Of a DNA stretch of 64,000 nt, positions 4,444 through 54,854 are shown piece after piece. The position numbers and the translations under genes were made by a program. Position 1 is the first letter of the stretch, and each line of letters begins with the position of its first letter. The notes beneath the pieces were generated by a model, which searched no databases, was not told the DNA's origin, and worked only from the letters and a program-made list of their open reading frames with translations. The DNA is from Schmidtea polychroa (Eukaryota), in the NCBI GenBank assembly GCA_044892525.1, contig CM097886.1, positions 174,208,312-174,272,311 of the forward strand, written 5' to 3'.

Positions 4444-7400
4444 GTAATTCGTAAAATTATAATGTTCTTGTGAGATATTTAAAATAGCAAAAGTTATATA
4501 CAAAAATTTATTAATGAAAATGAAAGTCAGCATAATAAATATGCTAGACCAAATACAGTAGGCGAGCTACTATATGGGGTGTTTAATATTCATGTGTGCC
4601 ATTTTAAGGATGTGGGTACAATCATCCATTCTCGTTTTTCTTGTGTCATTGATAGCAGCCCCGATAATTTTCATATATTTTTCTGGAGCCTTTAATCACT
4701 CTATCTATCATTTTGTTCTTTATGGGCATGTACTCTTCATATCTGAGTCCCAATTTTCTGAATACATCATTATTCCGTTTGTCCCATGTTCCGAGGGAGC
4801 ATACCACGAATGCTTCTACTGTTGTATATGTGTTTGTTGCTTCTTGGATGTCTTGTGCTAATTTTCTGTATTTGTTTTGGTTTTTTGTTCTTGATGCTTC
4901 AATGGTTGGACGGTCATCAAATGGGCATTTTACATCTATTATCATTATGCGATCCTTTAATCTGGCTACAATGTCTGGTTTTAACATTTCCTTCGCTTCT
5001 TTTTGTTTTTTTCTGTTTCAAAATTGATTCCTTTGTTTCTTAATATTTCTTCCAGTGCTTTTTGTATTTCATTGTGCTTGTTAGTCCTCACTCTGGTTCC
5101 TCTCACACATATGTTTAGGACATGTATGGATGATTCGTGTGGATTTTCACAGTTTCTGCACTTTGTGCTGCCTAATCTGCCTCCTTGGTTTGATTGTTTC
5201 ATATTTATGTCAAGCATGTTAGCTCGAGCCTTAATTATGAATCTCCATTCGTAGTCCTTCAGGTTTTTCGGCATTTTCCATTCTGTGTATTCTGATTGTG
5301 GTAATCTCAGAATATGGCCTTGGCAGTTGGTTTCTGTCCATTTTTGAAAGTATGCCTCACGAATCATCCAGTGTAGTTTCTTTGAGGTTTCATCTAGATG
5401 AGGTGGAAAAACTTCTTCGGCTTTTTCTTGTGAGTTGCATTTGATGTTGCATCCTGTACCTTTATTTCTAATTATAAAGGTAACCTTTATATGGTGGTCC
5501 TTGTACAGTTGTGTGATTGCGTTTTTTATTCTATCGAGCCAGGATTTTTTGACTAAACTTGATCTTCTATGTTCATATGTTCCATCCAGCCTCTTCAATG
5601 CTTCTGGTAGTGAGTTGATGGGAGTTTCAGTTCTGGTTTCGGCTACATCAATCAGTTCTTTTGTGATAATTTTTACTATAGCTGTATGTTTGCTGTATCA
5701 GCTTTAGGAATCTTGCTATTGTTTGTATCATCTGTTCATCCACGATTTTGGTTATGCCTATTCCTCCTTTTTCTTTATGGGAGTAGAAGATGGCATCCAT
5801 TAGTGAGCTTTTCTGTTGTAGATCTAGCACTTTTTTATCTTTTTTCATCATTCTAATTTTATCATCGAATTTTTCTGCTTGGGTTTTTGTTATTTCCTCT
5901 GCTTGTAAGATAAATATGAATTTCGAATGACAGAAGGTGTTGTATGCTTATATCTTTTGTTGAGCTCTTAGGAGTGATTTGAATATGCTTGTTGTTTTGG
6001 CTTCCACTTCTTGGAAGATCTCATTTAGGTCGTTTTTTGTATATCCTATTGAGACCCCCAAGTAAGTGTATAGATTTTCCTAGTTTATCTTTTTGATCTT
6101 GATGCCGTTGAGGTAAATGTTGTTTTCCCAGCCAACGTTGTCATTTTTGTTGATATAATATCCACATTTTCTGGTTTAAATATCAGATGGGCTAGTTTAG
6201 CTTGTTCCACGATTATGTCTAGCAGTTCTTGTATCAAATGATGTTGTGGTGCCATTAAGACGAGGTCATCTGCATAGGCTAGGATACTTATTTTTCTCCT
6301 GCTATCTGAACTCCTTTTCCGCTGTTTATTACAGCTTGTATTAGATATTCAATACAGAGACTAAAGATTATCATGGATAATGAGCATCCTTGTTTGACAC
6401 CTTTTTCTTGTTTAATTTCGCTGGATTTTGTGTCTCCACTTTGGTATATAGTGTGACAGTCTTTGTAGCACTCTTGCAGCAGGTTTATGGTGTTTTTGTT
6501 TAAGCCTTTTTGTTGAAGAGTATGCCATATAATTTCGTGTGGTGTACTACCAAATGCGTCCGCAAGATCCAGGAACACAAGGTGACACTGTTGGCCTTTG
6601 TATCTTTTTCTATTTGATTTTTTCTTTTGGACTGTTATTATATAATTGTGTTCGTCGCATTCATTGACTATATTTACTGCTTTTCGCCATTCTGATATAA
6701 GTCTGTGTTTGTGGATCCATTGGAGAATTCTTCTATTTAATATTTTCATGAAGATTCTGTAACTGGTTGGCATTAACGCTATTGGTCTCCAGTTGGCTGG
6801 ATATAGAGCCTGACTATCTTTTCCTGGTTTTATTATCAATTTTGTAGTGTAGGTTTTCCATGAATCAGGGATTTTCTTTGTTTCCAGTATTCTATTGAAT
6901 ATTGGTGTTAGCGGATCTTCCATTATCTAATCTTTCCATGCTCTGATTGGGATTCCGTCATCTCCTGGAGCTGAGTCTTTGCTGTTTTTTATTGCAATGA
7001 TTACATCTTTTTCTGTTATTGTTTTCGAAGATTCCCATTCGGGTTTTCTGTCTGTGATACTGATCTTGTCTTGTAACTTGGGAGATTTTGTCCTCGTGAA
7101 ATGTAGATCCATTGACGCTGGTGTTAGGTCTATGACCTTGTTCGAGTCTTGATGAATTTCTTATATTGCTCTGCCAGGGTTTAATGTGTAGAGTCTCTGT
7201 ATTTGATAGGAGCAGAGAGTTAGCTTTTCGTTTTCAGTTCTGTATGCTCTTTTTGGTTTTTGTTTTTAAACCAGTAGAGGATTTCATTTATTGATAGTTG
7301 GTGGAGCATAATTGATTTACTGCCTCCTCAATATCCTCTTTCCTTTCTTTGTTTGAGCATTTTTTGTATCTTTTAATGTCGACTATGATACTTTGGGTTT

Positions 7401-7840
7401 AAGATAACCCACTAATAATTTGATATGAATAAACAAAATAAATAAAATGACACGAACAAAATTTACTTTTACTAATCAAAAGTTATGAAGCATAACCTAT
7501 AAATAACTCATAATGATTTATATTTACATAATCACGTTCTAATTTATTTGGTTATGAAAATAGAATTGGCTTAAATTTTATTTACTATATTCATTGATCA
7601 AATTCACTGGAAAATGGCAGTGTTGCAAATTAGTGAAAATCAAAAACATCGATATATTTACTGATTTATAGTCAAGCTTTTTAAAAAATACTATTTCCTA
7701 TATGTAAATATCATAAACTAGTTTTATAATAATAAAAATTTTAAATTTTCGATATAGTACTTTTTTGAAATGAATTAATTTAAATGAGAAGATATTTAAA
7801 ATGAGCGATCCGTAGACAGGTGAACACCTGGAAAAATCAA
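4444..7840 (+). pseudogene. Duplicated copy of the FAM32A upstream region and first ~40 coding nt, interrupted by a retrotransposon and a short repeat
   Basis: 4444-4493 plus 7404-7840 align with 14943-15316 (gtaattcgtaaaatta.aatgttcttgtgag...; atgagcgatccgta...cacctggaaaaatcaa). Confidence 0.85.
4494..7400 (-). mobile_element. 5'-truncated, disrupted non-LTR retrotransposon with restriction-like endonuclease (NeSL/Utopia/R2 group)
   Basis: RT motifs NWRPIAL, FLDLADAFGS, GVKQGCSLS, AYADD; CCHC knuckle CRNCENPHESSIHVLNIC; RLE KPDIV..IIDVKCPFD; AATAAA near the 3' end; AAG repeated on both sides (4491-93, 7401-03) relative to the empty site at 14990-14996. Confidence 0.9.
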
Positions 7841-7884
7841 TAAATAATTTCAATATTATAAAATAAAGATTATAAACGACAACT

Positions 7885-8961
7885 ATGGCTAACAATCCAA
7901 TAATAATACCACTCGAAGAAGTTGAAAGATTTTATGTTGATTGCTTAAAATCAGCAGGAGCCAAACTGGAACATGCAAAAGCCCTAGCTGCCGTTATTGG
8001 TTGCGCAGACCACCGAGGCTATTTTAGTCATGGTCTTAATAGATTGCCAAAGTATATTAAAGATTTAAGAAAAGGTTTGATTAATATAAAAGATGAGCCA
8101 AAAGCAATTAAAGAAACTGTTTCGACAGCTTCAGTTGACGGATGCAATTGTTTGGGACCAGTTGTTGGGAACTTTTCAATGAAAATAGCTATGGAAAAAG
8201 CGAAAAAAACTGGAATAGGCTGGGTAGTGGCAAACCATTCAAATCATTATGGAATTGCAGGTTGGTATTCAATGAAAGCTGTTGAAGAGGGATTGATCGG
8301 AATGTCTTTTACAAACACGTCTCCATTAGTTTTGCCAACAGGATCAAAGAAGGCAGCATTAGGTACCAACCCAATATCAGTTGCGGCACCAGGTAATGTA
8401 AAAGAAGACTCCATAATAATAGATATGGCCACTTCCGCCGTAGCATTTGGTAAAATTGAGATGAAGAATCGCTCTCAAACACCGATTCCATTAGGTTGGG
8501 CTGCAGATACAAATGGAAAAGTAACTGATGACCCAGCAAAAGCTTTAAAAGGTGGATTGCTTCCATTAGGAGGTTCTGAAGAAACAGGAGGATACAAAGG
8601 ATATGGTTTAGGACTAGTGGTTGAAATATTTTGTGGAATGCTGTCTAATTATTCATTTGGTCTAAATGTCAGACAATGGGATAATGATGAAGCAATAGCA
8701 AATCTTGGTCAATGTTTTGTTGCAATAGATCCTGGAGCTTTTGAAAACGGTTTTACTGAAAGAATATCAAAACTCTCATATGAAATGCGTAACTTACCAA
8801 GAGCTAATGAAACAATTCCGGTTTTAGTTCCGGGTGACCCAAAACGAATTCACATTGAAAAATGTAAAAACCTCAAAGGTATTCCATATGTCTCAGTTTT
8901 AATTAAAAGTATGGATGAACTAGCCGATGAACTGAAAGTAAAACCTCTCCAAAGAAAGTAA
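7885..8961 (+). CDS. Ldh_2-family (type 2 malate/L-lactate dehydrogenase-like) NAD(P)H oxidoreductase, intronless, copy 1
   Basis: 358-aa ORF with family motifs DHRG.FSHG, SNHYG, FTNTSP, LGTNPIS, DMATS, GGYKGYG, VPGDP. Confidence 0.92.
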   Translation: MANNPIIIPLEEVERFYVDCLKSAGAKLEHAKALAAVIGCADHRGYFSHGLNRLPKYIKDLRKGLINIKDEPKAIKETVSTASVDGCNCLGPVVGNFSMKIAMEKAKKTGIGWVVANHSNHYGIAGWYSMKAVEEGLIGMSFTNTSPLVLPTGSKKAALGTNPISVAAPGNVKEDSIIIDMATSAVAFGKIEMKNRSQTPIPLGWAADTNGKVTDDPAKALKGGLLPLGGSEETGGYKGYGLGLVVEIFCGMLSNYSFGLNVRQWDNDEAIANLGQCFVAIDPGAFENGFTERISKLSYEMRNLPRANETIPVLVPGDPKRIHIEKCKNLKGIPYVSVLIKSMDELADELKVKPLQRK

Positions 8962-9409
8962 ATTTCAAAAAATCTATTAACTTGATTTTGAGAAAGTTTA
9001 CAAATTATTATTTTATGTTATTTCCAGTTTGTTTGAATTTAATGGGGCACTAAATATTTCATTACCCAGTCTTATTGTAAACGGGAAATTTTTATGAAAA
9101 TATTTTCTATTGTTAGTGAAAATTCACTCTAAAAAATTCGCGTTGCCTCAACCGTGAAATATCTAACGCTGAAATCAGTCGTGATATTATGCTATAACTT
9201 ACTATGAAGTGTCAAATGTTACGGAATAAAGTCAAATTTTACTGATTTCATAAGCAAATTTAAACTCACTTCAAAGCTTTATAATTATATTTCTTTTGGT
9301 GTTTTGAATTTTCTAATAATCTTTATTCATTTAGAGTCACCACTGAGAATTTAATCTACGATACCAATTGTGATTTGAGACAACGGTACCAACCTTTCCT
9401 TCACGCTCA

Positions 9410-11940
9410 TGTTGAGGTCTCAATATTTGAGATGCTCAACTTTACTGGTTCTTAAGTAAATAAAAAGAATATGAGTCTATAAATATTTATTGAACAACAA
9501 AATTTACCAATGATAAAATTGACAATAGTTTCTATTCTTTCAATTGATTACTTCCTCAAATTGATTTCAAAATTCTTGCAAAAATATGTTTCTGTTGTAT
9601 GGTATGGAGTGCGTGCAATATTGATTAGAATGTTTAGTCGATTGTAGATCGTTTCTGGCTGATCTGGGTTTTAATCTTTTCTCAGGATTTTTGAATATTT
9701 TTCAGATGCTAAAATTTTTGGTGAATGAAATAAATTCTAAGGGTATTTATATTATTTTATTGCTATAGAAATTTTAATAAAAAATTTAATTTATTTCCGG
9801 CCTATACGCACGGATATTATTTATTCTACATATTTTTTTAATATATTTTGAGAGATGTTTTTAATAATTGCGTGTTATTTATTTTTTTAATTTCATAATT
9901 TTATTTTCGGTCTATATTGAGTAGAAGCATGTTTTGACAATAATTAATATACTGTAGTAATTAAATCTATAATATTAAATATTAATTGTACCTTTAATAA
10001 TAATGATTTATCTTAAGTTTTATAATAATTAATATCAATGATTTATTTAATCCCCTTTTATTAGAATATTAAATATGTAATAAAATATAATTAATAAAAG
10101 AATCACAAAATCATATCTGTATACAAGGGATAATTAAAATGAAAGTTAATTAGTACAATATACACATAAATAATATTCAGTAATATGCACATGAAGGATA
10201 GTAAGTTGTCATGTTCTGTACAAGGTGGGTTAGATGGAATTGGATTGACGTTGGGTTGATAGAACCTCAAATTTATTGTCTTTCCTCGGCACACACATTG
10301 ACTCTGTACTTCCTAGGCCTGTCTTTTAATATTTATTCAATATGAATGGGGTGATAGGTTTACCAGTGTTTCCAAACGAATAATCGAGTAACCGAGTACT
10401 CGTCTATTTTCAGATATTTTCCATTAATCGGTTAATCGGGTAATTTCGTCGAGTAACCGAGTAGTTACTTTAGATATAATTTTTTTTTTCAAGCAAAAAA
10501 TATCAGAAATTATGATATTGGTTGCTATAGTAACATTCAATATTTTCTATTTTTCTTAACTAAGCAAGCAAAATTATAAGAATTTTTTCCTTTTTTTAAG
10601 AAAAAAATAGCAGTTAGTAGACAATCAGACATTGTTAAATTGGTTGCTATAGTAACATTAAATATTAAAAATACTATTTTTATTAACTGTAAGATTTTTT
10701 TTTCTAGTTTAAGAAATTGTATTTAATTCAGTGAAATATTTTACACTTTTACGCGTTCATCACAGAACACAGATCACAAATCGTAAGTATAATTATTAAT
10801 TACAATAATAATTATGTGTATAAAAATTATGTTTGTTTTTATTTTGTTCGAATTTCGAAAATATAATTTATAGATATTCTCTAATCCATAATGGCCACAA
10901 ACAAATCGAAAGTTTGGGATTATTTCAAAAAATTATCATCAGAAATTGAGCAATGTCAAGTCAATTTATGTACGAATAAGATATCCATTAAAGGTGGTAC
11001 CACAACTGGAATGATAAATCATTTAAAAAAACATGATATCAGTTTAAAACCTCAAACCAAAAGGAATGTTCAAAATTCTGCTGATGATTCGCTAGAACCA
11101 AGCACATCCAAAATACCTAAAGTTAATGGTATGTTAACATTTATCAGTAGAGAAAGAGAATCACTGTAGGAAATTATATCGAAATGCGCAACAAAAGATG
11201 GTATTCCATTTCGTACAATTGTCAAATGCGATGCAATTCGCTGCTTTGTAAACAGTCGTAATTACAAAATGCCAACCAGCGTATCGACTGTTCGAAAACA
11301 CGTTCTAACATTTTTCAAAGAAAAAAAAGCTGAAAATAAGCATAATTTAGAAGCCAAAATTAAATCAGGACAAAAATTTACAATTACGGTCGATGAATGG
11401 ACTGATATCGCTTTAAGAAGATATCTTAATGTCACACTGCAATCTATTTCGAGTCAAATTGTTCTTGGTTTGGTTCCGATTATAGAAAGCTGCACATCTG
11501 AAAAAACCGAAGAACTAGTATTCAATCGATTGAAAGAATTCGGAGTAGATTTTGATTCTGACATAGTTGCTTCCGCGCACGATGGTGCAAATGTAATGGT
11601 GAAATACGGCAAAATCATATCAGCTGAAAGCCAATTATGCTATAACCACGCTTTTCACCTAGCCGTCATTGAAACTTTTTACTCAAAACGTAATGAACCT
11701 GGTTATGTTACATACTAAGTTATATATACAATAAACATTTGATATATTTAATAAAATTTAATTAAATTCTTTAATTATTTATCTTTAATTATTTAATCTT
11801 TAATTATTTAATTTTAGTTTCGAGTATAATAACCGAGTAACCGAGTACTCGCTCAATTTTTTTTGTAATACTCGAATAACCGAGTATTACGAAAAATCGA
11901 GTAATTTGGAAACACTAAGGTTTACCCTCATTATCCAACA
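9410..11940 (-). mobile_element. Solo LTR (about 970 bp net) carrying a nested hAT element
   Basis: TGTTG...CAACA termini, 4-bp TSD CTCA (9406-09, 11941-44); absent from the paralogous site at 25683-86. Confidence 0.8.
10364..11917 (+). mobile_element. Non-autonomous, internally deleted hAT element (BED zinc finger plus partial catalytic domain)
   Basis: TIR CAGTGTTTCCAAA / TTTGGAAACACTA, 8-bp TSD AGGTTTAC, subterminal CGAGTAAC repeats; ORFs SKVWDYF..CQVNLC..TTGMINHLKKH and TVDEWTD..SAHDGANVM..CYNHAFHLAV. Confidence 0.92.
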
Positions 11941-11970: not shown

Positions 11971-12812
11971 TGTAATGTACAGTGATTTTTGTTAATATTT
12001 TAGTATTCACAATTAGGAATTGTGTATACTAAGATATAAAATACAACCATCTGGGAAATCCAGATTTTTAATAAAAAACTATATAGCGATAATTTACTAT
12101 AGTAAATTATCGCTATAGTAAAAATAAAATATGAAATAAATCGAAAATAAATCGAAAAGAATATTCAACAGATAAACTACGTAATCTACGTTAGTCTATT
12201 CAACTACAACCGGACGTAAATAGAAGGTTCCAGTTCAGTTTCTATTTAAAACAATTCTCCAAAAACCAATCTCGAACCGAACTCAAGCTTCAATATCACT
12301 AGCTATAAACGCTACTGAAAGTATTGAAAGATAATAAAACATTACTGTAGTAAAGCAATTTCGTATTCATTCTATTTCAAAAGACTCGAAATTATCATAG
12401 CCAGAATTGTGGTTTGTGATATCCCTAATAAATAAGTTCAGTTTCTATTTAAAACTATTCCCAAAAATAATCTCGAATCGAACTCAAACTTCAACATCAC
12501 AGCTTACCAACAATATTGAAGGCGCGAATTATCGTAACCAGAATTGTGTTACGTGATATCCCCAAACAAATAAGGTTTTATTTCTTTGTTATAATAAAGT
12601 TTAAAAGATGTAACATTTTGTTATTGTTTTACGTTATATTCGTGACTTTATATTGTTCGTAATTATTATATTTTGAACATAGCACGCACCCCGATTGTCC
12701 TGCTACAAGTTTTAACGGTGACTCTTTCGGGCTCTACAAAATCTTCATCAAAATAACATAAATCAACATTAATTAACAATAATAACGATTGCAAATTACA
12801 ACCTCCATAACA
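11971..12812. mobile_element. Solo LTR with internal ~207-bp tandem duplication
   Basis: TG...CA termini, 5-bp TSD TCTAG (11966-70, 12813-17); absent from the paralogous site at 26668. Confidence 0.8.
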
Positions 12813-13399
12813 TCTAGTAATCTCAACCCAAGAGACGATGTCAACACATACACAAGAAATCGGTCACCTATCGTCAATCTTCATAATATTTATGGAAAAA
12901 GTTTTTACTAAGTAAAACAGAAATTTCGAACAATAATACTGATAAAAATGATTTAATGAGAAACTTTTTTGATATTGAATTTGGCATCAATGGTTTACAA
13001 TTCTATGAAATTAGAAATTTATATGTAGCATGATATTGCATACAACAGTAATTATATAATTAGATCCAATTACTCTTTACTATTTGAATTTCATTGTACA
13101 CATGCTTGAGTATGATTGGTGTTTTCCATTACCAAATACGGTTTTTTACTTATAAGCGTTAACTTGAAATTTAATAGTGTTAATTACTTATTTGGTTACA
13201 TTAATTTTATATTTTTTGTACTTTATTATATTTATTTAATATAAATTTTCATTGAATGTTAATTATACGCCATAATCAGGATTGTTTGTATCTGGCATTA
13301 CATAAACCATTATTCCGAGAAAAGCAACAGCTGGATTCGAAATTAATAATTTAAAGCAATAGCTGTAGGAACATAAAACTAATTCGATCAATATATTTA

Positions 13400-13830
13400 T
13401 TGAAAGCGACACCAAATTGACCGATCATAGAAATATCTGCTCCACCAGTCAAGTCTTCCATGAAAGCTTTTAAATCTGATTCTGGCGATTATACCAAGAT
13501 TGTTCATGATTTCACCTTTGGTAATATCAACTCCAGTATTGTACAATGTCAAATTATTGAGCTCTTTATTTGGAATAACTTTAATCATTAACTCATTTAG
13601 GCTATCCGAGACAGATGGGTTCATCAAGTCATTGTAACGAACTTTATCAAGAACATCATTAGCATCGGTAATCAATCCTCTAAATAAGATTTCTTTGTTT
13701 ATATTGATCGCGTAAATTTTCGGAATTTCTATCAACCTGCCTAAATCAGTTTGAGTGAAAGAAGCAAATGATAAATTATTAGAAATACTTGATTTTTCAA
13801 CCAATCTGATTTCCTCATTGACATCGTATT
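13400..13830 (-). pseudogene. HSP90: HSP90 N-terminal (ATPase domain) pseudogene fragment
   Basis: NKEILFRGLITDANDVLDKVRY..NNLGIIAR, then after a +1 frameshift SDLKAFMEDLTGGADISMIGQFGVAF; truncated, no introns. Confidence 0.85.
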
Positions 13831-14019
13831 CAGTTATTTATTGTGAATGAATTGTATTACAGTTTATTAAACTACTTTGTTATACATGATTATTTTATAT
13901 ACTTAATTTCTATTATTGACGAAAGCTATAAATAAAAGTTTAAAACGTAATCACATTATTTTTATTCACGCAATTTTTATAGTAAAATAAATCAAGATTT
14001 ATTTGATAGGGGAAATAGC

Positions 14020-14942
14020 GCCCGGGAGAGATTGAAATTTGGCGCCCCTGGTGCCAAAAGAATACACCACTTCCATTAATTATGTACTTACAGGAATGGA
14101 ATTGGTCTTGAAGAGATGCAAAGCTATACAATGCTTAACCAAACTTATATTATAACGAAAACCAATTAATTATAAATATTTATTATATATGTGTATATAC
14201 ATATAAGGCTCCATCTCCTATATCAGCGGGTGACCGAGTTTGCAAGAAATGAGTTGCCATGTTTCACAAAATTTCCTTTACTATGAAAAAATAATTCTGA
14301 TTCTTTTCTCAATATTGAATAGGCTATTCTCCGATTTCTCGTTTTTATATATAGACTACTGTATCGGGCATATCGATATCTATAAACATTATCATCAATT
14401 GTCCTTCCTTCTTTCAAACGATTTTTAGGATCTTTCCAGGCTAAGTAGCATTTTCTATGCTCAAAACTGTTTTCATGATCAGCCACCTTCGGATTTAGTC
14501 GCCCCTTTGCAATAAACCTTTAGATCAGTGGTTCTTAACCTTTTCAAACTTATGGACCCCATAAATATATAATTGGTACCGACTGACCCCTGAAAAGTTA
14601 AAAAATTAATAAATTGATAGTAAAACACATACATTTTTTAATAATTATTTATAAATTTGTTTATTCAGCTTCAAACCAAAATAATAAAGTTTTTTTGTAA
14701 ATAGTGCCACGGACTACTTAGAACCCGTTCATGGACCCCAGGTTAAGAACCACTGCTTTAGATAGACCAGCAAAACAGTTTTGTTTTAGTTTAACTTTTG
14801 AAAACAGTAAAAATGGAAAGCAGAATATAGAAATTTAATATTGAAAAAAACAAAGAAATGCAAAAAAAATATAAATGATCATTTCACAGTTTTGCGCCCT
14901 TCGACTCGGCGCCCCAATCGGCAACCCCTAGCTACGGCTCTG
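14020..14942 (-). mobile_element. Degenerate hAT (ZMYM1-like) remnant with one recognisable terminus
   Basis: HENSFEHRKCYLAWKDPKNRLKEGRTIDD resembles hAT TTF/DUF4371 sequence; terminus ...cccctagctacggctctg at 14942. Confidence 0.5.
14526..14755. mobile_element. hAT-Charlie-type MITE (230 bp)
   Basis: Perfect TIR CAGTGGTTCTTAACCT, 8-bp TSD CTTTAGAT. Confidence 0.93.
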
Positions 14943-15275
14943 GTAATTCGTAAAATTACAATGTTCTTGTGAGATATTTAAAATAGCAAAAGATATCCCA
15001 CTAATAATTTGATCCGAATAAACAAAATATATTAAATGACACTAACAAAATTTATTGTTGCTAATCAAAAGTTATGAAACTTTTAAATAACTCATAATGA
15101 TTTAAATATTCATAATTACTTTCTAATTTATTTGGTTATTAAAATAGAATTAGCTGAAATTTTATTTCTTATATGTAAATATCTAAACTAGTTTCTTTGA
15201 AATTAATAAAAATTTCAAATTTTCGATATATTACTATTGTTTAAATGTATTAATATAAATAACAAGATATTTAAA

Positions 15276-15646
15276 ATGAGCGATCCGTACGCAGAGTATA
15301 CACCTGGAAAAATCAAACTTAAGTAATTAGCAATGCTTAAATAATAAAATTTAACTAATTTTACAGAAAGAAAAAAGGAACCAAAAAATTAAAAAATGCA
15401 GTTGTAAAGCATTTGGAAGAATCTAATAAAGAAACTAGCGAGCCTTATGAATATAAAACTAATAATGATAAAGCTGAATTAACTGAAGCTCAAAAGAAAT
15501 TCAGACAAACAACTCAAAAAAGACTTGTTGAAAATTTTGATAACAAAAAGGAATTATCATACAAAGACCGGCTTAGTCAATTCAATCGAAAATTAGATAC
15601 TTTAAGTGAACATTTTGATATACAGAAGGTTTCGTGGACCAAATAA
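15276..15646 (+). CDS. FAM32A: FAM32A-like protein, 2 exons (15276-15322, 15367-15646), 108 aa
   Basis: MSDPYAEYTPGKIKLK joined over a 44-nt GT-AG intron in frame to ...FNRKLDTLSEHFDIQKVSWTK, the characteristic FAM32A C-terminus. Confidence 0.9.
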
Positions 15647-15691
15647 AAAGTTTTATTCAATAAAAGTTATTCACAAAGTTTTGACTTAAAA

Positions 15692-16497
15692 TTAATCATC
15701 GTCCCACCAACATGGTAATCCCAATCCACGAACGTTAATAGTTCCCTAGAAAAATAAGTTATTTGCCAAATAAGATAAATGTTTTACGACAACAGTAAAT
15801 GGGGCCGTTGATCTCTCCTGTTGAACTCGATTATTCTCATCTACCTTATTTGATATAGGGAAAGTATCTTGCCAGATATATTCTGTAACTCTAAATCTAT
15901 TTTACTATGTAAAATTTTTAATATCTTATTCAAGTAGTAAACTTAATTTTATCTTGTACATCTATGGCTACTTCTCCATTTTCTGAGCTCCAAATCCATG
16001 AATTTTTTTCTGATTGACTATTAACAATAAATGAATAAATTTAAAGTTAACATACAATTCAAATGATTGAGGAATATTTGCTTTGGGTATAATAATATCA
16101 TCGAAAAATTCTATTGACACTTGAAGACCTTCTTGAGAACATTTGGCAACAGTTCCAGCAATCATTTCGTTAATAAATGGTTTAAATATTACATATCTAA
16201 AACTGACTGAAAAGTGATAATTGATTATCTCAAAAATTAAAAATTTAACCTGTAACATAATATGCACCATCACCGGGAAAAATTACGCGATCTCCAATAT
16301 CTAAAATATCCCACAAACATATACCCAGACCTGTATTTAACAAAACCTAAAGCTAAATAAAATAGTTGAATTAGTATTTAATATACTTTATTTGAAAGTT
16401 TTCTATTTAACTCTTGTTCTATGCACTTTACTGTTCCTAACCCGAAATGTCTAGGCTCAACGCGAACTGTATCTTTAATATTAACTAAATCAAACAT
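15692..16497 (-). CDS. POLR3H: RNA polymerase III subunit RPC8/RPC25, 6 exons (16497-16387, 16346-16250, 16206-16056, 16017-15943, 15896-15788, 15745-15692), 198 aa
   Basis: MFDLVNIKDTVRVEP..ELNRKLSNKV..GLGICLWDI..IFPGDGA..FRYVIFKPF..FFDDIIIP..FRV..GLGLPCWW; all five introns GT-AG (40, 43, 38, 46, 42 nt) and phase-consistent. Confidence 0.93.
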
Positions 16498-19271
16498 TTA
16501 AAAGTATATTTTAAAAATAGTCAAGATAAATTATTATTTAAACAAATTTATTCGATCTTAACTAATTTTGAAATTTATACATCAGTAATGATGGTAACTG
16601 TAAAAGTCAAGTTAACCCTTAATTGCAAGATTTTTTTTATTTATTTAAAATAAAATAAAATAATGTTTCTTTGACTGAATATATTATTATAAAAATTATT
16701 TAAAAAATCTAATGTAAAATGAACTAAATCCGTTAAACAGCTTTGTAGCTCACAAGCAACGCTATGAAATGATTAGTTCTTATTTATTTTAGGCAATCTA
16801 ATCGTGAAATTCTGGTATGTTGCAAATTTGCTACACAGTGTAATCAAGGGTTACATAGAACATTTAATAACTTCATTTAAAACCTTCATTTAATTTCAAA
16901 ATATTAATCAATGTTTTTCATTTAACAAGTATTTTTGTTATATCCTTTTTAAAGTGTTTGCAAATGACTTTATCCAAAACTCATATTAAGAAAAAAACTT
17001 GATCTGTAACATGAAAATAAATAAATGTAAAGGAAAATGAAAATTGATCAATGGTGATAAAAAGATCAAATTTTATCAATTTAAATAACTAAATAAATAA
17101 ATTATATGATAATAATTAATTTTGTATTTCATGAATATTATATCTAAATATTCATGATAATGGATGTTTTAGACAAATTAACATTATTTTAATTTTCTAT
17201 TATCCCAATTTCTTATCCACCTAAACTCTCAGAAAATGATTTATTGCATTCAGAAACTGTAAGGAAGGATTTTGATATTGTACATTATGGTTACGGTTAA
17301 ATTCAAATGTGAGTTCCATTTGTAAAATCGGTAAACCTTAAAGCATTTGGATCTTTGAATAGTTTTATAAGAGTTTCAAGACATTGGAATTATTGTATTT
17401 GAACACATTTGATTTGTAATCTATAGTCACTTTGAACATAATCGTCATTAGATATAGTTCTTCTTCAATAAGTATTTTCATTCAGTACTCTAGTAGACCT
17501 TGCAGTATAGATCAATCCGTATAAAAATGTTTTGAAATATTGAAAGACAAAATAAGTTCAAATCTAATTTTTTGTTTGTCCAGACTTCCAAATTAATTTT
17601 ATATTATAAACAAATGAGCGTTTTGATAAAATTACAGCTGTTTTTTCAAATATAAAAAAATATTAAGAAAAAATGATAACCCATGATTCACACGCAAAGT
17701 GTAAACATAAAGTTGGATATTGTGTTACTAAGAAAGATTTCCCTGTTATTTAATTTTACAAATCATTTAACATTTTATTTGTACAATGAAAAATTAAAAT
17801 TAGTAACAGATCATATAGCGATTACTTTCATGATAAATCCACGACTCTTTGCTCCCAAGTTCCTTAATATAGCTGACTTATTAAAGTAATTCTATCAAAT
17901 GACTCTATGTCAAGAAATGAATGTATAATATGTATATTTCGCATAATCCTCTTTCTTGGTATATAAGAGTGCTTAAAATTCGATTGTATTTTTTAAAAGA
18001 ACACAATACGTTTAATGTTTGTTGGTTAAATGAATTAATAATCTCGATTGCATACCATTTCACTTCAAATCTTTCCCAGTCTTAATTGTCAGGACAAACT
18101 ATCAAAAGAAATATATTAGTCTTTTACTGTATTTACTGTATTATAAAAAGAAAGAAATAATATGTTTTTGCGTTAGTCCGAATATATGACTAGGTTTTCC
18201 CCAGAAATATCTTTAAAAAACAAGATTCATCTTATATTCGGGCATTCGATTGTCGGTCATTTTCATGCATGTGTTGAGGTTCTCAAATCTCAACTTGATA
18301 GTTCCTATATAAGTTGTTAGAACACAAACACTGGTTCAATAAATTTATTTAATTATCATAATTAAATTAAAATTATATATAAAGTTAAAAATATAAAATG
18401 AACAATCACCTCAAATATATATATATATATATATATGCGTGTGTATGTGTATGTGAATGCTTGCAGCTTCCTGAGCTCGGATGTGTAATATAGGTATACT
18501 CTAAATTATATTGCAATCTCAATTTCTGAATTTGCAATTCTTCTTAGAAGCTCTTACTTTTTGGGTGATTTGACTGAGAAATCAGTCGACTTATATATGA
18601 AATCCCTGTTGACACTCCATTTCGAATGTCAATACACTCTGTTCTGTTAAAGTCAATAGAATTTCTGTTTTTAAAAGTGCAAATTTTAATTGTTACTATG
18701 TTTGGAATTATCCCTTTATCCAGCATTTTAATGTATTTTTGTTTGTTATTGATTTTAAAGTTTTAGCCGCTTTGTATGATTCTTGAAAAGATGTCATTTC
18801 TTTTTTGGCTTAGACATAAAATTTATTTTTTACTGTCAAAAACGTGGAATCAACTATTAGTACGAAATCAGAAAAGTCTCAAGGAAGATTCAAGCACATT
18901 TTTATATTTATCTTTTAACTCCAAAGGTATAGTTGTTAAAAATTTATCAGTATAACTCAACTTTAAAACACTGTGATATGCCACTACATATACTAGATCA
19001 AATTGATTATTGTAATTGATTGTAATGAAACTAATTCATGATTATATGGATTTTTAATAATTTTATCTTGTAATAAGATTTAGTTAAAGAATTTACTGAC
19101 TTTGTATTTTACCATTATTGCCAATAAAACACAGAAAATTATTTTATTATTATTATTTTTTTTTGATTTTTCTATAATGCACTTGGTGCAGTCAAACAAA
19201 CAATATGCACTTAGTGCAAAAGAATAAAATAGACATTCAACCAACTGGTTGATTTTTAAAAAATAATTGAT

Positions 19272-19282
19272 ATAATAATAAT

Positions 19283-19367
<85 letters not shown>
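19272..19367. repeat. (TAA)n microsatellite
   Basis: Long, mostly pure TAA run; continues briefly after 20835. Confidence 0.95.
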
Positions 19368-19368
<1 letters not shown>

Positions 19369-20834
19369 AGGGTTTCAAGTCGTATTATGACAAACATAAC
19401 ATATTTTTTGAATATTTTAATATAATCTTTGACAATGTTAAATACATTAATGACAATATTAATAAAATAAATGCCAATTTAAATAATATTAATGACAATA
19501 ATACATATATTAATGTAATATATTACAAAAAATGTAATGACAAAAAAATTAAGTGACATTTAATTAAGAATAATTTCTCCCTCAATACATCTTGGTATAT
19601 ATGACCACATATTTCGCACATAATTACTACAGTCTTGTGAAGATATTAGGGTACTTCCATTTTCAATTTCTCGCATAAGATCATCTTCATTTCTGGGGTT
19701 GGTTCTTTTGGTGATTTCCTTCCACTTGCTGAACATGTTCTCAATAGGATTGAGAAAAGGGGAGTACGGCGGAAGAAATTTTACAGTTGTATTTTCATTA
19801 TTTATAGCGCTAAGCACTTCAGGACTTTTATGGAACTTAACATTATCCATTATGAATACGCATCTGTGAATCTCTTTATCAATTAAAACTTCCTTTAGCT
19901 CTGTTATATATTCGATAAACTTCTCTTTATTGAGGGCCCGATTAAAAGATTTATAAAACAATAACCCATTTTTGTTCATTGCACATGCTATAGATATATT
20001 TCTTGATCGTATGGTCGGTACATTTAATGTTGCAGGAGTGCCTATTTGTGATCTTCCTCTTGTTGCTCTCATAGAAACGTTGAATCCCACCTCATCAATA
20101 AATATTAATTCTTGTTCTGAATATATACTTAGTATAGAAGAGAATTTAAGTGCATATTCTTTTCTTGTTTCAATTACTTCTGTTGAATTTCTTCTCTCTG
20201 GAATTAAATGAAATCTTTTCATTGAATAATGAAAACGAGATAATAAATTATATACATAAGTTGTGGATATTCTAATTTGAAACTCTGTAAATACCTTTTC
20301 CGCTAAAACTTTCAACGATAATTGGCAGTTATTATCAACCCACTCTTTTACTTGATTTTTTTGATCCTCTGTCAATTTTTGTGGATGATCGCCGCCTCTC
20401 TTATCAGCTTCCACCACTCCAGTGTTATGGTACTTCTTCAAAATACCATAAATTGTAGTTCTTTTTATTGATAAAATTCGAGAAATATCAACTATTGAAG
20501 TCCCGTCATCATATGCTGTAATAACACGATCTCTATCAGCATTTGAAGTTGTACTATTTCTTCGTTGTACTCGAAAAGTGTTACGGATAGCTGGTTCGGC
20601 AGTGTTATCACTTTCGACTACTATTTCTGTATTATTTGCTATGGAAGCAGGAAATTGATTTTTTTGTCAAGCCATGCATAGAATGTCTAAAAATATATTT
20701 ATAATGTCATTAATAAAGCTTTTATTGTTATTAATTTAGTATATATTGTCAATAATAGATTTAATATTGTTTATTATCTGGTTAATATTGTCAAAAAATA
20801 TATTATGCTTGTCAAAATACAACTTAAAACCCTG
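19368..20834 (-). mobile_element. IS630/Tc1-like DD34E DNA transposon, full length
   Basis: Imperfect ~43-bp TIR CAGGGTTT.AAGT.GTATT.TGACAA.CATAA.ATATTTTTTG, TA on both sides, GACAAT subterminal repeats. Confidence 0.92.
19560..20675 (-). pseudogene. DD34E transposase, open except for TGA at codon 3
   Basis: ATG GCT TGA at 20675, then open to 19560; IFIDEVGF, IMDNVKFH, LPPYSPFLNPIE with 34 residues between the second D and E. Confidence 0.85.
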
Positions 20835-22789
20835 TAATAATAATAACATTTAAAAATAGACAATCAACAAACAAGATAAATTTATTCGCATGTCTTTAAG
20901 AACCAATAAATCAATATAATTGTATAAATAGATAAATTAACAGATCACATCACATTGTTAATAATAAGTTATTATCACAAGTCAATATAATAATGTTTAT
21001 TCCTTTCATCACATAGATACCATCATTATTGATTATTGTCCACATGTATATTTATTCAGTACCCATTTGTTCTTATTATGTAGTATTTGAGCTTCAAAGC
21101 CCTTAATATTCTTCCATCTTCTAACACATGATTAGACACAGAATACAAAGTTTTAAAAATGTATTTATAAACTTTTTCGTCAAAAATGGAACTTGTCTTA
21201 TAGTCTTAGTTGCATTATATTCAGGGTAATACGGTGTATATTTATCGGGATTTGAATTTATTATACCGAAGTTTTATTGTCAGAGGATTCGTTAAACGAG
21301 GTATTTTTTGTAAACAATAAATAATTAGAAATACACAAGATTTCTTTAAATACTTAAAAATAGATTATGAAGATTTGCATTTTACAAATCAAAAGTTAAA
21401 ATAGCAATGCTTATATAGCTTCTTCTAATCGAGTTTATGAGACAATATAGGTACTAATAGGACGACGCTTTGATATTAAAAAATTATTAAATGACATAGT
21501 ACAGTAAATAAGCACTATTTAATTTAGCTCCCCCGTTATATATTGAAAAATTTTCGAAAAAAAAATATATATATAGGAACACGATCATTACCTGGCGACC
21601 ACTTCTTCTGGTAATAGAACCCCTAACGTGTCAAATTATCTTGTCTGANNNNNNNNNNNNNNNNNNNNNNNNNNNNNNNNNNNNNNNNNNNNNNNNNNNN
21701 NNNNNNNNNNNNNNNNNNNNNNNNNNNNNNNNNNNNNNNNNNNNNNNNNNNNNNNNNNNNNNNNNNNNNNNNNNNNNNNNNNNNNNNNNNNNNNNNNNNN
21801 NNNNNNNNNNNNNNNNNNNNNNNNNNNNNNNNNNNNTATTTATTGAACATGTGAAGGCACTATTTTTGAAATTCTTCCAATCAACGATTGTCGCGCTTGA
21901 ATTCGTCTCGCATTGTAAGATATATAGTGAGAGGGGCGGATAAACTGAATAAGAAACAGTAAATTGACGTTTAAAGATTTAGTGGCAGTTATTAATAAGG
22001 TATTATCCAACCAAATAAGTTATTGTTGCTTTTCAACTTTTTGCTTTAATTCTTTTTATAATCTTTATGAAAATATTTAAAATAAAAAATCGCGTGACCC
22101 ATATCAAAGCGTCACCATAATATAAAACTTAAAACCCAATTTTCAATATTCTACTATTAAACAATTTCTTTGTTCAAATAAAATAAGGTAGTTCACATCT
22201 CCTGGCACTCCGAACTCTCCATAACGAATCTCGTGTTTACCTCGGTCTGGGAAGAAAACTAAGAGACATTATGGGATCACCTGTAACCCGCATTCACTGC
22301 AACTTTCGATATGATCATTGAGATTGTTATCCATGTTGAAAAAACTATTAAACTTTACGTTTTGATCACAAAATCAGTTTGCATATATAATTCGATTATT
22401 AGAACAACCTGACTGCTTTCAAAGTTAGGATAATCGAAGTTTTACTACACATTTTGCATAAGAACCTTTTTTTAAAATTTTGCCACTGACTTCTTTTCCT
22501 TTATATTTATTGAAAAGCTTGACTATAAATCAGTAATATATCGATGTTTTTGATATAAATAAATATCTTTTAGTTTTTATAGTTCAATTTAATACAGATT
22601 AAAACAGCATATAAACGTATTATAGGGACCTTTGACCCACTATCGATGTCTGTAAATAAAATATAAAATCAAAGCTGTAATCAATATCAAAATTACAAAT
22701 ATATATATATATATATATATTTTAAGGAAAAATATTTCGATTATAACTGACATACATTAGAAGTGTACGCAACCTTTTCTTGTACCCCT

Positions 22790-22935
22790 AACTTGAAAAA
22801 GGCAGTGCAGAAAATTCGTGAGTATCAACAAACATCGATATATTACTGATTTATAGTCTTCGAACTCTCTTTTCAATTCAATGGATAAAATAATCAGTGG
22901 TGAAATTGGAAGAAATAAAAGTTCTTATAATAATC
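22790..22935 (+). repeat. Dispersed ~100-150 bp repeat (other copies about 7590-7690 +, 22480-22556 -, 55800-55924 +, 61800-61935 -)
   Basis: Shared core gcagtg..gaaaattcgtga.tatcaa.aaacatcgatatatt.actgatt.atagtc. Confidence 0.8.
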
Positions 22936-23241
22936 TTAAGATACATAAAAAAATCCATTATAGCACTTTGCCATCGATACTTTAGCGTTATATACTAAAC
23001 AAAAAAACTCACAAAGTTTATAAACTACGGGTAGGATTTGGGGAAGTTTTAACAATAACAACGCAAAGAAGAGTGACACCGATGCCTAATGGAACATTGA
23101 GATCGCATCAGATATAAGTCCTTAATGGCCATAACCTCTCACGAGCCATAGGTTGGTTACCGTTGATTTAAATGATAAAATGTTCGATATAAATTAATAA
23201 ATAATTTCAATATTATAAAATAAAGATTATAAACGACAACT

Positions 23242-24318
23242 ATGGCTAACAATCCAATAATAATACCACTCGAAGAAGTTGAAAGATTTTGTGTTGATTG
23301 CTTAAAATCAGCAGGAGCCAAACTGGAACATGCAAAAGCCCTAGCTGCCGTTATTGGTTGCGCAGACCACCGAGGCCATTTTAGTCATGGTCTTAATAGA
23401 TTGCCAAAGTATATTAAAGATTTAAAAAAAGGTTTGATTAATATAAAAGATGAGCCAAAAGCAATTAAAGAAACTGTTTCGACAGCTTCAGTTGACGGAT
23501 GCAATTGTTTGGGACCAGTTGTTGGGAACTTTTCAATGAAAATAGCTATGGAAAAAGCGAAAAAAACTGGAATAGGCTGGGTAGTGGCAAACCATTCAAA
23601 TCATTATGGAATTGCAGGTTGGTATTCAATGAAAGCTGTTGAAGAGGGATTGATCGGAATGTCTTTTACAAACACGTCTCCATTAGTTTTGCCAACAGGA
23701 TCAAAGAAGGCAGCATTAGGTACCAACCCAATATCAGTTGCGGCACCAGGTAATGTAAAAGAAGACTCCATAATAATAGATATGGCCACTTCCGCAGTTG
23801 CATTGGGTAAAATTGAGATGAAGAATCGCTCTCAAACACCGATTCCATTAGGTTGGGCTGCAGATACAAATGGAAAAGTAACTGATGACCCAGCAAAAGC
23901 TTTAAAAGGTGGATTGCTTCCATTAGGAGGTTCTGAAGAAACAGGAGGATACAAAGGATATGGTTTAGGACTAGTGGTTGAAATATTTTGTGGAATGCTG
24001 TCTAATTCTTCATTTGGTCCAAATGTCAGACAATGGGATAATGATGAAGCAATAGCAAATCTTGGTCAATGTTTTGTTGCAATAGATCCTGGAGCTTTTG
24101 GAAACGGTTTTACTGAAAGAATATCAAAACTCTCATATGAAATGCGTAACTTACCAAGAGCTAATGAAACAATTCCGGTTTTAGTTCCGGGTGACCCAGA
24201 ACGAATTCACATTGAAAAATGTAAAAACCTCAAAGGTATTCCATATGTCTCAGTTTTAATTAAAAGTATGGATGAACTAGCCGATGAACTGAAAGTAAAA
24301 CCTCTCCAAAGAAAGTAA
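23242..24318 (+). CDS. Ldh_2-family NAD(P)H oxidoreductase, intronless, copy 2
   Basis: 358-aa ORF with the same motifs as copy 1; differs at 8 residues. Confidence 0.92.
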   Translation: MANNPIIIPLEEVERFCVDCLKSAGAKLEHAKALAAVIGCADHRGHFSHGLNRLPKYIKDLKKGLINIKDEPKAIKETVSTASVDGCNCLGPVVGNFSMKIAMEKAKKTGIGWVVANHSNHYGIAGWYSMKAVEEGLIGMSFTNTSPLVLPTGSKKAALGTNPISVAAPGNVKEDSIIIDMATSAVALGKIEMKNRSQTPIPLGWAADTNGKVTDDPAKALKGGLLPLGGSEETGGYKGYGLGLVVEIFCGMLSNSSFGPNVRQWDNDEAIANLGQCFVAIDPGAFGNGFTERISKLSYEMRNLPRANETIPVLVPGDPERIHIEKCKNLKGIPYVSVLIKSMDELADELKVKPLQRK

Positions 24319-24652
24319 ATTTCAAAAAATCTATTAACTTGATTTTGAGAAAGTTTACAAATTATTATTTTATGTTATTTCCAGTTTGTTTGAATTTAAT
24401 GGGGCACTAAATATTTCATTACCCAGTCTTATTGTAAACGGGAAATTTTTATGAAAATATTTTCTATTGTTAGTGAAAATTCACTCTAAAAAACTTGCTT
24501 TGCCTCAACCGTGAAATATTTAACGCTGAAATCAGTCGTGACAAATTGATATTATGCTATAACTTACTATGAAGTGTCAAATGTTACGGAATAAAGTCAA
24601 ATCTTACTGTTTTCATAAGTAAATTTAAACTCAATTCAAAGCTTTTTAATTA

Positions 24653-25558
24653 TGTTGAGAATAAAAAATAACAAATTTATAAATAAATAAATAAAATTAC
24701 TTAGGTGAATATTGTCATGACAAACGGGACGATCTATGGGAACTCAGAAAAGAAAACGGAAGTAAAAAGATATGAGAAATGAGAAAGAGGAATGAAACAA
24801 AAGAAATTAGACAAGAAAAAAAGGTCAGTACTAATTAATTAGTACAAAGAGATTCAAAAAAAAGAATTTAAAATTCCAGAAAAACAAAATATGGGAAAAA
24901 GGCGTATCTTGACAGCTTGTCAAAATAGCGGAATTACCGGGAGAAGGCGGCCTAACAAAAAATCAAAAGGGAAAACATATCTCGACACCTGTCAGAGATA
25001 AAATGGGAACAGTCGGGAAATGCAGGAGAAAGAAAAGTGGAAAACATTTGATTTTCTCTAGTGCCACCAATAAAACAACCTATATAAAGATGAACTGGTA
25101 GACACAAAATTCAGACAAAAGGAGACAAAAAAAATGACAAAATTGAAACCAAACCGATCCGACTGATTAGACAGAGTCGGAAGAAACTTTATTGGAAAAC
25201 GATTTGTGAAGAATAATTGTTGGAGAAGATTTGCGTAAACGAATTAGTTGAGAAATAAACGAAAAGAAGTTATTTGAATATTTGAATAAAGTTGTGAAGA
25301 AGGTCAAAGAAAACAACCAACTTAAAGTTTCAATAAACCAATCAGTAGTTAGTGACCTTTCAATCTGATGTTGTACACAAGTGCTATTCCTCACTGAGTG
25401 TTGCAATAAGCATTGTATAGTCACCGAGCTGGGTGTTGAATTGTTTGTCAGTGTAAAGTGAAAATTATTTGTGATTATCAATAAAGATTTCTGTTGTCAA
25501 GTGTTATTTGTGAATCAGTCAAAGACACGCTTGGAGTCGAGCAACCTTTAACCCAACC
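24653..25558 (+). mobile_element. Solo LTR (Gypsy-like, 4-bp TSD)
   Basis: TGTTGAG...CCCAACC (terminal A apparently mutated), TSD ATTA; TATA-like element near 25081 and AATAAA near 25481; absent at the paralogous site 9284-87. Confidence 0.8.
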
Positions 25559-25707
25559 ATTATAATTCTTTTGGTATTTTTGAATTTTCTTATAATCTTT
25601 CTTCATTTAGAGTCACCACTGAGAATTTAATCTTCAATACCAATTGTGATTTGAGGCAACGGTACCAACCTTTCCGTCCCGCTCATAAATCCAACCTATA
25701 TCAATAT

Positions 25708-40517: not shown

Positions 40518-40558
<41 letters not shown>

Positions 40559-46313: not shown

Positions 46314-46382
<69 letters not shown>

Positions 46383-54765: not shown

Positions 54766-54854
<89 letters not shown>

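Follow-up and report, generated by a model that had tools for sequence, protein, structure and literature searches.

How does an intact enzyme gene behave once a duplication has placed it behind the 5′ end of an unrelated gene? In the 64,000-nt stretch of Schmidtea polychroa contig CM097886.1 analysed here (the window), foreign 5′ DNA sits directly upstream of an intact Ldh_2 oxidoreductase ORF (copy 1), and a near-identical ORF (copy 2) lies further downstream behind its own flank. The original prediction was that one segment, 14943-27004, had been duplicated with loss of its middle, and that copy 1 had thereby become a new gene on a borrowed, active promoter. The first, structural part of this proposal is supported by colinear unique blocks, by microhomology at the junction, and by a read contig bridging it. 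The second part is not supported by the state of the borrowed DNA or of the ORF behind it.

Layout of the duplicated unit and the chimeric junction

As predicted, the DNA ahead of copy 1 (4444-4493 plus 7401-7839, termed A′) is a copy of 14943-15316 (A), which comprises the FAM32A upstream region and ~13 codons, with 98% identity over the leftmost 50 nt and 89% in the remainder (Table 1). A whole-genome search places FAM32A 5′ sequence at only two sites, A′ and the parental A, which rules out a dispersed repeat. Rfam and tRNA scans of 1-30000 detect no RNA gene hidden in the well-conserved 50 nt at 4444-4493. The donor gene has two exons and encodes ~108 aa with the C-terminal end KVSWTK. We call it FAM32A on the basis of a sub-threshold match of exon 2 to Pfam PF08555 (E 0.27; 12.5 bits, where the cut-off is 22) and of an ESM-Atlas feature match (0.95; 218 of 256 features in common, 31 FAM32A clusters).

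In a three-way alignment, copy 1 tracks FAM32A until ...GGAAAAATCAA and tracks copy 2 from AATAAATAATTTC. The switch at 7839/7840 thus runs through the proposed AA overlap into sequence matching 23196 onward. The borrowed FAM32A frame stops after four codons, and consequently no protein fusion is formed. A′ itself is interrupted twice, by a LINE flanked at both ends by a 3-bp AAG target duplication and by a short repeat with relatives in the window at 22791-22858 and 55802-55893, over which contig depth is thousands-fold above its flanks.

Table 1. Positions of the features of the two units within the window.
Feature	Position	Strand	Basis and remarks
A′, distal piece, separated from the rest by the LINE	4444-4493	+	49/50 identical to 14943-14992
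Degraded non-LTR retroelement (LINE), 2.9 kb	4494-7400	-	RVT_1 in ORF 6288-6923(-), E 8e-18; several broken ORFs
A′, middle piece	7401-7590	+	88.6% identical to 14990-15174
High-copy SINE/MITE-like repeat, ~100 bp	about 7591-7691		Insertion site ~110 bp ahead of the copied ATG; missing at parental 15174/15175
A′, proximal piece: FAM32A 5′ region and ~13 codons	7692-7839	+	89.1% identical to 15163-15316
uORF of 4 codons from the copied FAM32A start (ATG AGC GAT CCG TAG)	7801-7815	+	Direct reading; codon 5 is TAC in the parent, TAG in copy 1
Chimeric junction, AA microhomology within AAAT(C/T)AA	7839-7840		Three-way alignment; bridged by X1 contig 7655-8658
Sole native Ldh_2 5′ flank left in copy 1, 45 bp	7840-7884	+	45/45 identical to 23197-23241
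Ldh_2 copy 1, intact ORF, 358 aa, intronless	7885-8961	+	Pfam PF02615, E 3e-111; 8 derived replacements
3′ flank identical between copies, right end of homogenised tract	8962-9136	+	Copies agree over all 175 bp; 10 differences follow within 155 bp
Upstream unit, 3′ flank part 1 (diverged)	9137-9410	+	9284-9410 against 25559-25686: 93%
Upstream unit, last 3′ flank part, right end of duplicated unit	12809-13137	+	Against 26664-27004: 92% of aligned columns, 83% counting gaps
Spacer between units, repeat-derived	13138-14942		Dozens of genomic copies; family similarity stops at 14942; longer relative from 13168
A: parental FAM32A upstream DNA with the beginning of exon 1	14943-15316	+	Alignment, whole-genome search
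FAM32A gene	15276-15646	+	Exon 1 15276-15322, intron, exon 2 15367-15646; splice sites read from sequence
POLR3H (Rpc25) exon, within the segment absent from copy 1	15968-16273	-	PF08292, E 1.2e-8
Ldh_2 copy 2 with own 5′ flank, ancestral residues kept	23196-24318	+	ORF 23242-24318, 358 aa, intronless; Pfam E 7e-114; zero derived replacements

The homologous blocks of both units are colinear, share one orientation, and are confined to this locus in window and whole-genome comparisons. Homology continues through the 3′ flank to 13137/27004 and is broken only by repeat insertions; such co-duplicated flanks exclude an origin of copy 1 as a retrocopy of copy 2. Head-to-tail contact of the units is not seen directly, as 1805 bp separate 13137 from 14943, and the two were probably once adjacent. 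No clean target-site duplication was found around the spacer (13138-14942), and a sensitive homology search of the spacer against the sequence preceding 4444 or following 27004 gave no match.

From this layout we infer the following order of events. First, a segmental duplication of tandem type would have copied FAM32A-POLR3H-Ldh_2 (14943-27004) locally. The upstream unit lacks the middle part (15317-23195), which may have been dropped while the duplication formed, by template switching, or deleted afterwards through microhomology. Either way, 374 bp of FAM32A 5′ DNA would have come to end 45 bp ahead of the Ldh_2 ATG. Afterwards, the LINE and the short high-copy repeat would have entered the borrowed DNA, and repeat DNA would have filled the space between the units. 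Gene conversion, presumably much later than these insertions, would then have made 7840-9136 nearly identical to copy 2 again, followed by decay of copy 1.

Homogenised coding tract and one-sided substitution

Both ORFs encode full-length Ldh_2 domains, covering profile positions 2-332 of 333 of PF02615 with 372 (copy 1) and 381 bits (copy 2; cut-off 38.8), and find relatives of solved structure in PDB 1v9n (E 1e-68) and 2x06 (E 1e-64). The active-site loop (G-x-x-S-H-G-x-x-R) is kept as SHGLNR in both copies and aligns with the SHG of 1v9n and 2x06. In the Ldh_2 tree, the intronless pair forms a long branch inside a flatworm clade; a multi-exon paralogue is found on another chromosome. Searches of public assemblies for the exact protein of either copy returned no record. 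The copies differ at 10 nt, in agreement with the 10 diagnostic SNPs reported before, and copy 2 indeed retains upstream DNA of its own, which is unique in the genome from ~22940 to 23195.

Across 7840-9136, the copies share 99.2% identity, compared to 89-93% in the outer flanks. Of ~244 synonymous sites, 2 differ, compared with 71 of 777 sites in the flanks (Fisher P = 5e-7), corresponding to a dS of 0.008 in the tract versus 0.08-0.11 in the flanks, and the adjacent non-coding DNA inside the tract shows 0 differences in 220 bp. This drop in divergence far below the level of the outer flanks indicates recent gene conversion between the copies over 7840-9136.

The replacements since then lie on one side. 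All eight amino-acid differences are derived on the copy 1 branch (P = 0.008), with branch lengths of 0.025 for copy 1 and 0 for copy 2. Six of the eight derived residues are absent from all 120 homologues, and two replacements, H46Y and E320K, fall on columns that are invariant among these. H46Y is located three residues ahead of the SHGLNR loop, whose histidine we take to be catalytic, while three further replacements are changes to Tyr or Phe. The substituted columns are scattered evenly across conservation ranks, and seven of the eight replacements are G/C to A/T changes. Moreover, dN/dS is 1.18 and gives no sign of selection maintaining a new gene. The nonsynonymous share of the differences (8/10) equals the neutral expectation (0.77), and a frame would stay open after 10 random changes with a chance of 59%; all 10 differences together are too few to tell neutrality from a brief burst of positive selection. 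Copy 1 of the reference strain would thus have gathered changes at a neutral rate since conversion, and occasional gene conversion may have kept its reading frame open.

Expression evidence and readings of copy 1

Sequencing-run contigs bear on whether copy 1 is transcribed. The RNA-like runs X8 and X10 come from a strain other than the reference and have 8424C in common with each other and with the second strain, X5. At almost every diagnostic site, their contigs agree with copy 2; a copy-1 letter appears at 7934 in one RNA-like contig of X10. The X8 contig starts at 7864, which is 21 nt before the ATG and within the shared 45 bp, and that of X10 at 7914. Over 7721-7848, contig depth in both runs is zero, as judged from contigs of another strain at low depth. 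Transcription of copy 1 from FAM32A-derived DNA, a further element of the original prediction, is accordingly not seen in this low-depth material. Contigs lose rare variants, and their ends need not coincide with true 5′ ends or transcription starts. In X5, the sole contig over the diagnostic sites is of copy-2 type at ~1.7 times flank depth, and both copies may be identical at these sites in that strain. Given this possible identity, copy-2 letters in RNA do not assign transcription to either copy. Two loose contig ends in X5, at 7795 and 7832, do not reflect a different structure, as each of the two 30-mers has an exact match in an array of six copies on C4; this array has only ~19 nt of AT-rich sequence in common with the window, and the partial matches are judged to be chance.

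We put the probability of a tandem-type duplication with internal loss, followed by gene conversion and then by neutral decay of copy 1, at roughly 60%. As copy 1 mutates as if unconstrained and no transcript start is seen in the borrowed DNA, it looks like an ordinary fading duplicate. Most likely, copy 1 is redundant, weakly expressed or silent, and slowly decaying, while copy 2 is the working gene; the low or absent expression of copy 1 and its neutral status are deduced from the patterns above.

It is unlikely, albeit conceivable, that copy 1 is an ordinary expressed duplicate which starts transcription in its native 45-bp flank and is kept for dosage by gene conversion, with the FAM32A DNA as a passenger. 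The start of the X8 contig inside the shared 45 bp would fit such a gene, as would a relative with 68% identity, whose transcript contig shows a leader of only 32 nt, and the elevated depth of the copy-2-type coding tract in X5 could equal two identical copies. Yet contig ends are no transcription starts, the native DNA beyond -45 is wholly absent from copy 1, and copy 1 of the reference strain bears no signal of purifying selection.

We hold it for rather improbable that copy 1 is a functional chimeric gene which has gained new, broad expression from a captured FAM32A promoter and whose eight replacements are adaptive. In its favour, the intact 358-aa ORF begins 84 bp after the copied FAM32A ATG, proximal FAM32A DNA persists over ~110 uninterrupted bp, conservation is unusually high (49/50) in the distal 50 nt of A′, the replacements are all concentrated in one copy, and chimeric duplicates with new expression have precedents in Drosophila (PMC5460883, PMC1463047). 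However, the borrowed DNA is broken by the LINE and the short repeat, a uORF precedes the Ldh_2 ORF, the RNA-like contigs leave 7721-7848 uncovered, and the replacements are blind to conservation, AT-biased, and accompanied by a dN/dS of ~1, with two of them on invariant residues. The RNA evidence is weak, consisting of low-depth contigs of a different strain, and thus leaves promoter capture unproven but does not refute it. We give little credence to a more far-reaching version, in which copy 1 of the reference (probably sexual) strain is transcribed from FAM32A-derived DNA, the eight radical replacements (among them E320K, H46Y next to the catalytic loop, and three to Tyr or Phe) reflect a rapid shift in substrate or role, and gene conversion acts as a recurrent reset.

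An assembly artefact, with the junction or the second copy absent from the animal, can practically be dismissed. Assemblers tend to err where, as here, a repeat-rich genome has nearly identical 1.3-kb repeats at a distance of 15 kb, and X1 may be the sample behind the assembly, but a read contig does span the 7839 junction: contig 7655-8658 of X1 passes out of unique FAM32A-derived sequence and into the ORF with zero mismatches in its unique part. Copy-1 letters are present at 7/10 diagnostic sites in X1 contigs, X5 also contains 7401-7662, and the flanks and repeat insertions differ between the copies.

Relation to known systems and implications

Duplication, conversion, and decay together are a known kind of event. 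In Drosophila, tandem duplication has given rise to chimeric or 5′-recruiting duplicates (Rogers et al, PMC4069613, PMC5460883; Hun Hunaphu, PMC1463047). As in these cases, the partial 5′ end of one gene is joined to another at a duplication breakpoint or by illegitimate recombination with short microhomology, and an ORF could thereby come under foreign upstream DNA. In contrast to them, the planarian locus forms no coding fusion, and where altered expression was measured in Drosophila, none is seen here from the borrowed DNA and the recipient ORF shows no constraint. The homogenised tract resembles concerted evolution of tandem paralogues in that the coding region and near flanks are ~10x less diverged than the outer flanks, at silent and at non-coding sites as well. 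It differs in the one-sided decay that follows, as all later replacements reside in the copy without native upstream DNA. At the protein level, both copies match the Ldh_2 family (PF02615, animal 'YjmC-like') in full domain length and aligned SHG motif.

New-gene birth has been little studied in planarians. If copy 1 were active, the locus would be a dated, fully traceable case of a duplication breakpoint rewiring an enzyme gene to a housekeeping control region, and if it were both transcribed and shifted in role, promoter capture plus neofunctionalisation would have been caught in the act in a flatworm. For annotation, the lesson is that the open 358-aa frame is here no evidence of function. 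The present evidence points to the commoner outcome, a duplicate that has lost its own upstream DNA, looks intact through gene conversion, and drifts between conversions.

Borrowed DNA ahead of the copy 1 oxidoreductase

The window is AT-rich eukaryotic DNA (G+C ~30%) and lies at ~174.2 Mb of C2 in a 781-Mb assembly, which has four very large sequences. FAM32A, POLR3H, and transposon remnants separate two Ldh_2-type oxidoreductase ORFs. Among named proteins, the enzyme's best relatives are from trematodes, and a tree places it within a flatworm clade; the nearest solved structures to both proteins are an archaeal malate dehydrogenase and an archaeal sulfolactate dehydrogenase.

Features of the Ldh_2 locus and related sequences (window positions unless a sequence is named)
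Feature	Position	Parent or strand	Remarks
Copied FAM32A DNA, outermost block	4444-4493	parent 14943-14992	identity 49/50
LINE	between 4493 and 7401	minus	2.9 kb, dead; reverse-transcriptase domain, broken frames, AAG target duplication
Copied FAM32A DNA, middle block	7401-7590	parent 14990-15174	identity 88.6%
SINE/MITE-like repeat (~100-140 bp)	7591-7691, 22791-22930, 55802-55923, 61796-61933		read-contig depth thousands × single-copy level
Copied FAM32A DNA, inner block	7692-7839	parent 15163-15316	identity 89.1%
Ldh_2 copy 1	7885-8961		intronless 358-aa ORF; full-length Ldh_2 (PF02615)
zf-BED and hAT-like ORF fragments	10891-11718	+	copy 1's 3' flank; none in copy 2's flank
Spacer between units	13138-14942		1805 bp of repeat DNA
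FAM32A	15276-15322 + 15367-15646		two exons; named by ESM-Atlas match; Pfam support weak
POLR3H		opposite	Rpc25 domain
Satellite, short-period (~12 nt)	19252-19370, 40518-40593, 46311-46460, 54762-54861	both strands	
Tc1/mariner-type transposase ORF	19560-20441	-	open, 293 aa; DDE_3 (E 3e-28), HTH_32
Ldh_2 copy 2	23242-24318		intronless 358-aa ORF; full-length Ldh_2 (PF02615)
Direct repeat pair	24653-24851 / 25708-25914		copy 2's 3' flank; 91-96% identical, 1056 bp apart
Third Ldh_2 paralogue	C1:122810320-122817294	-	at least 8 exons; ~55% identity to window pair

The block alignments confirm the original prediction that the DNA before copy 1 is a diverged copy of the FAM32A 5' region, a sequence that a whole-genome search finds in only two places, the parent and copy 1. 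As also predicted, the alignment runs through FAM32A codon 13 plus AA and switches at 7839/7840 to the 5' flank of copy 2 (from 23196/23197), the AA overlap lying inside AAAT(C/T)AA. Homology to copy 2 then extends, broken by insertions, up to 13137/27004. Of its native upstream DNA, copy 1 retains just 45 bp, while copy 2 indeed keeps its own, ~250 bp of unique sequence without a counterpart in copy 1. The copied FAM32A ATG (7801) now opens a short uORF, 84 bp ahead of the enzyme ATG. Its frame stops at codon 5 (TAG; TAC in the parent) and, with TAC restored, still ends at a TAA just beyond the junction; thus, at no time would a FAM32A-enzyme fusion protein have been made.

Two insertions interrupt the borrowed DNA, the LINE and, ~110 bp before the copied ATG, a ~100-bp repeat (~7591-7691) present in thousands of copies. 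Ldh_2 copy 2 likewise has a copy of the SINE/MITE-like repeat ~310 bp upstream. The outermost 50 nt are 49/50 identical to the parent vs 89% elsewhere (~2% chance probability) and have no match in Rfam and tRNA searches; they could represent a conserved regulatory element or chance. The Tc1/mariner-type element, which lies within the segment missing from copy 1, may be young and possibly active.

Read support and origin of the duplication

The 7839 junction is spanned in reads by a 1026-nt contig of sequencing run X1 (7655-8658), with 0 mismatches in the copy-1-unique part. Other X1 contigs cover 7401-7663 and 8664-9300. Of the 10 diagnostic sites distinguishing the two coding sequences, 7 have the copy-1 letter in X1 contigs. 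Read depth in X1 is even across genic and non-genic DNA, indicating a genomic sample from the assembly strain. It may be the assembly's own sample, which gives the join read-level support without full independence. Run X5, from a second, diverged strain, contains 7401-7662 with 6 differences. Its loose ends at 7795 and 7832 were rejected as an alternative structure; both trace to an array on C4 that matches by chance over 19 nt. There, two unrelated 30-mers with six exact copies (C4:43037401-43979244, ~120-440 kb spacing) suggest a very large array of almost identical repeats.

Both the colinearity of the blocks and the microhomology at the junction fit the proposed tandem duplication with subsequent loss of 15317-23195, and they fit a one-step duplication by template switching equally well. 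In the spacer, 14942 is the exact end of a repeat family numbering dozens of copies, and a longer relative reaches back to ~13168, compatible with insertion at a former head-to-tail joint of the units. The spacer shows no clean target duplication, and we thus only infer that the units directly abutted. Outside the units, to the left of 4444 and to the right of 27004, the DNA consists partly of old repeats and has nothing in common with the spacer.

Gene conversion and constraint on copy 1

Identity is 89% in the borrowed DNA and 92-93% in the outer 3' flanks, 99.1% in the CDS, and 100% in both the 45-bp 5' flank and the first 175 bp of the 3' flank; the following 155 bp, from 9137, contain 10 mismatches. 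Divergence at synonymous sites is 0.008, and the flanks stand at 0.08-0.11 (Fisher P = 5e-7). Since identical silent and non-coding sites rule out purifying selection as the cause, 7840-9136 was recently homogenised by gene conversion. The direct repeats in copy 2's 3' flank have an LTR-like look and bracket ancestral sequence.

Eight of the 10 coding differences are protein-changing, and comparison with 60, then 120 homologues assigns all eight derived states to copy 1, leaving copy 2 without any (maximum-likelihood branch lengths 0.025 and 0, respectively). Six of the derived residues are absent from all 120 homologues, and invariant columns are altered by E320K and by H46Y, which lies three residues ahead of the SHG loop. 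The replaced columns are evenly distributed across conservation ranks, as unfiltered mutations would be, and 7/8 replacements are G/C to A/T, the direction mutation is expected to take at 30% G+C. Moreover, dN/dS is 1.18, the protein-changing fraction matches the neutral expectation (0.77), and a frame would be expected to remain open 59% of the time after 10 random changes. Taken together, the residue, column, spectrum, dN/dS, and open-frame evidence argues that copy 1 has been under relaxed constraint since the last conversion. With ten changes only, a short adaptive burst stays formally conceivable. Three of the 10 differences fall within 10 bp (8439-8448; two synonymous, L188F), which suggests that one multi-nucleotide mutation or a micro-conversion, not three separate hits, produced them.

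The C1 paralogue groups with flatworm sequences in the tree, and the intronless pair and the 68%-identical transcript P0001 form one long branch; the intronless lineage is thus probably an old, fast-evolving retrocopy.

Transcription and standing of the proposed chimeric gene

Expression was assessed from contigs of older runs. In the RNA-like runs X8 and X10, coverage is limited to the coding region, with zero contig depth over 7401-7592 and 7721-7848. The X8 contig (7864-8891) has the copy-2 letter at 10/10 diagnostic sites and two letters unlike either reference copy (8424, 8771); in X10, contigs match copy 2 at 8020, 8069, 8439-8448, 8744, and 8842 and match copy 1 only at 7934. These contigs thus give no indication that transcription starts in FAM32A-derived DNA; they come from another strain, as 8424C common to X8, X10, and X5 argues, and their ends are not equal to transcript ends. 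In X5, the sole contig over the diagnostic sites is copy-2 type at ~1.7x flank depth; the copies may be identical in that strain, and RNA letters could then not separate them. A relative with 68% identity has a transcript contig with a 32-nt leader, which hints at a native start site near the ATG.

The claim that copy 1 is a working new gene driven by a borrowed promoter is not supported, as insertions break the borrowed DNA, no transcript is seen there, and the ORF behind it evolves as if free of constraint, with gene conversion propping it up. The anatomy of copy 1 is real and cleanly illustrates a known process, in which a duplication breakpoint puts foreign 5' DNA ahead of an ORF, such cases having been described in Drosophila (PMC4069613, PMC5460883, PMC1463047).
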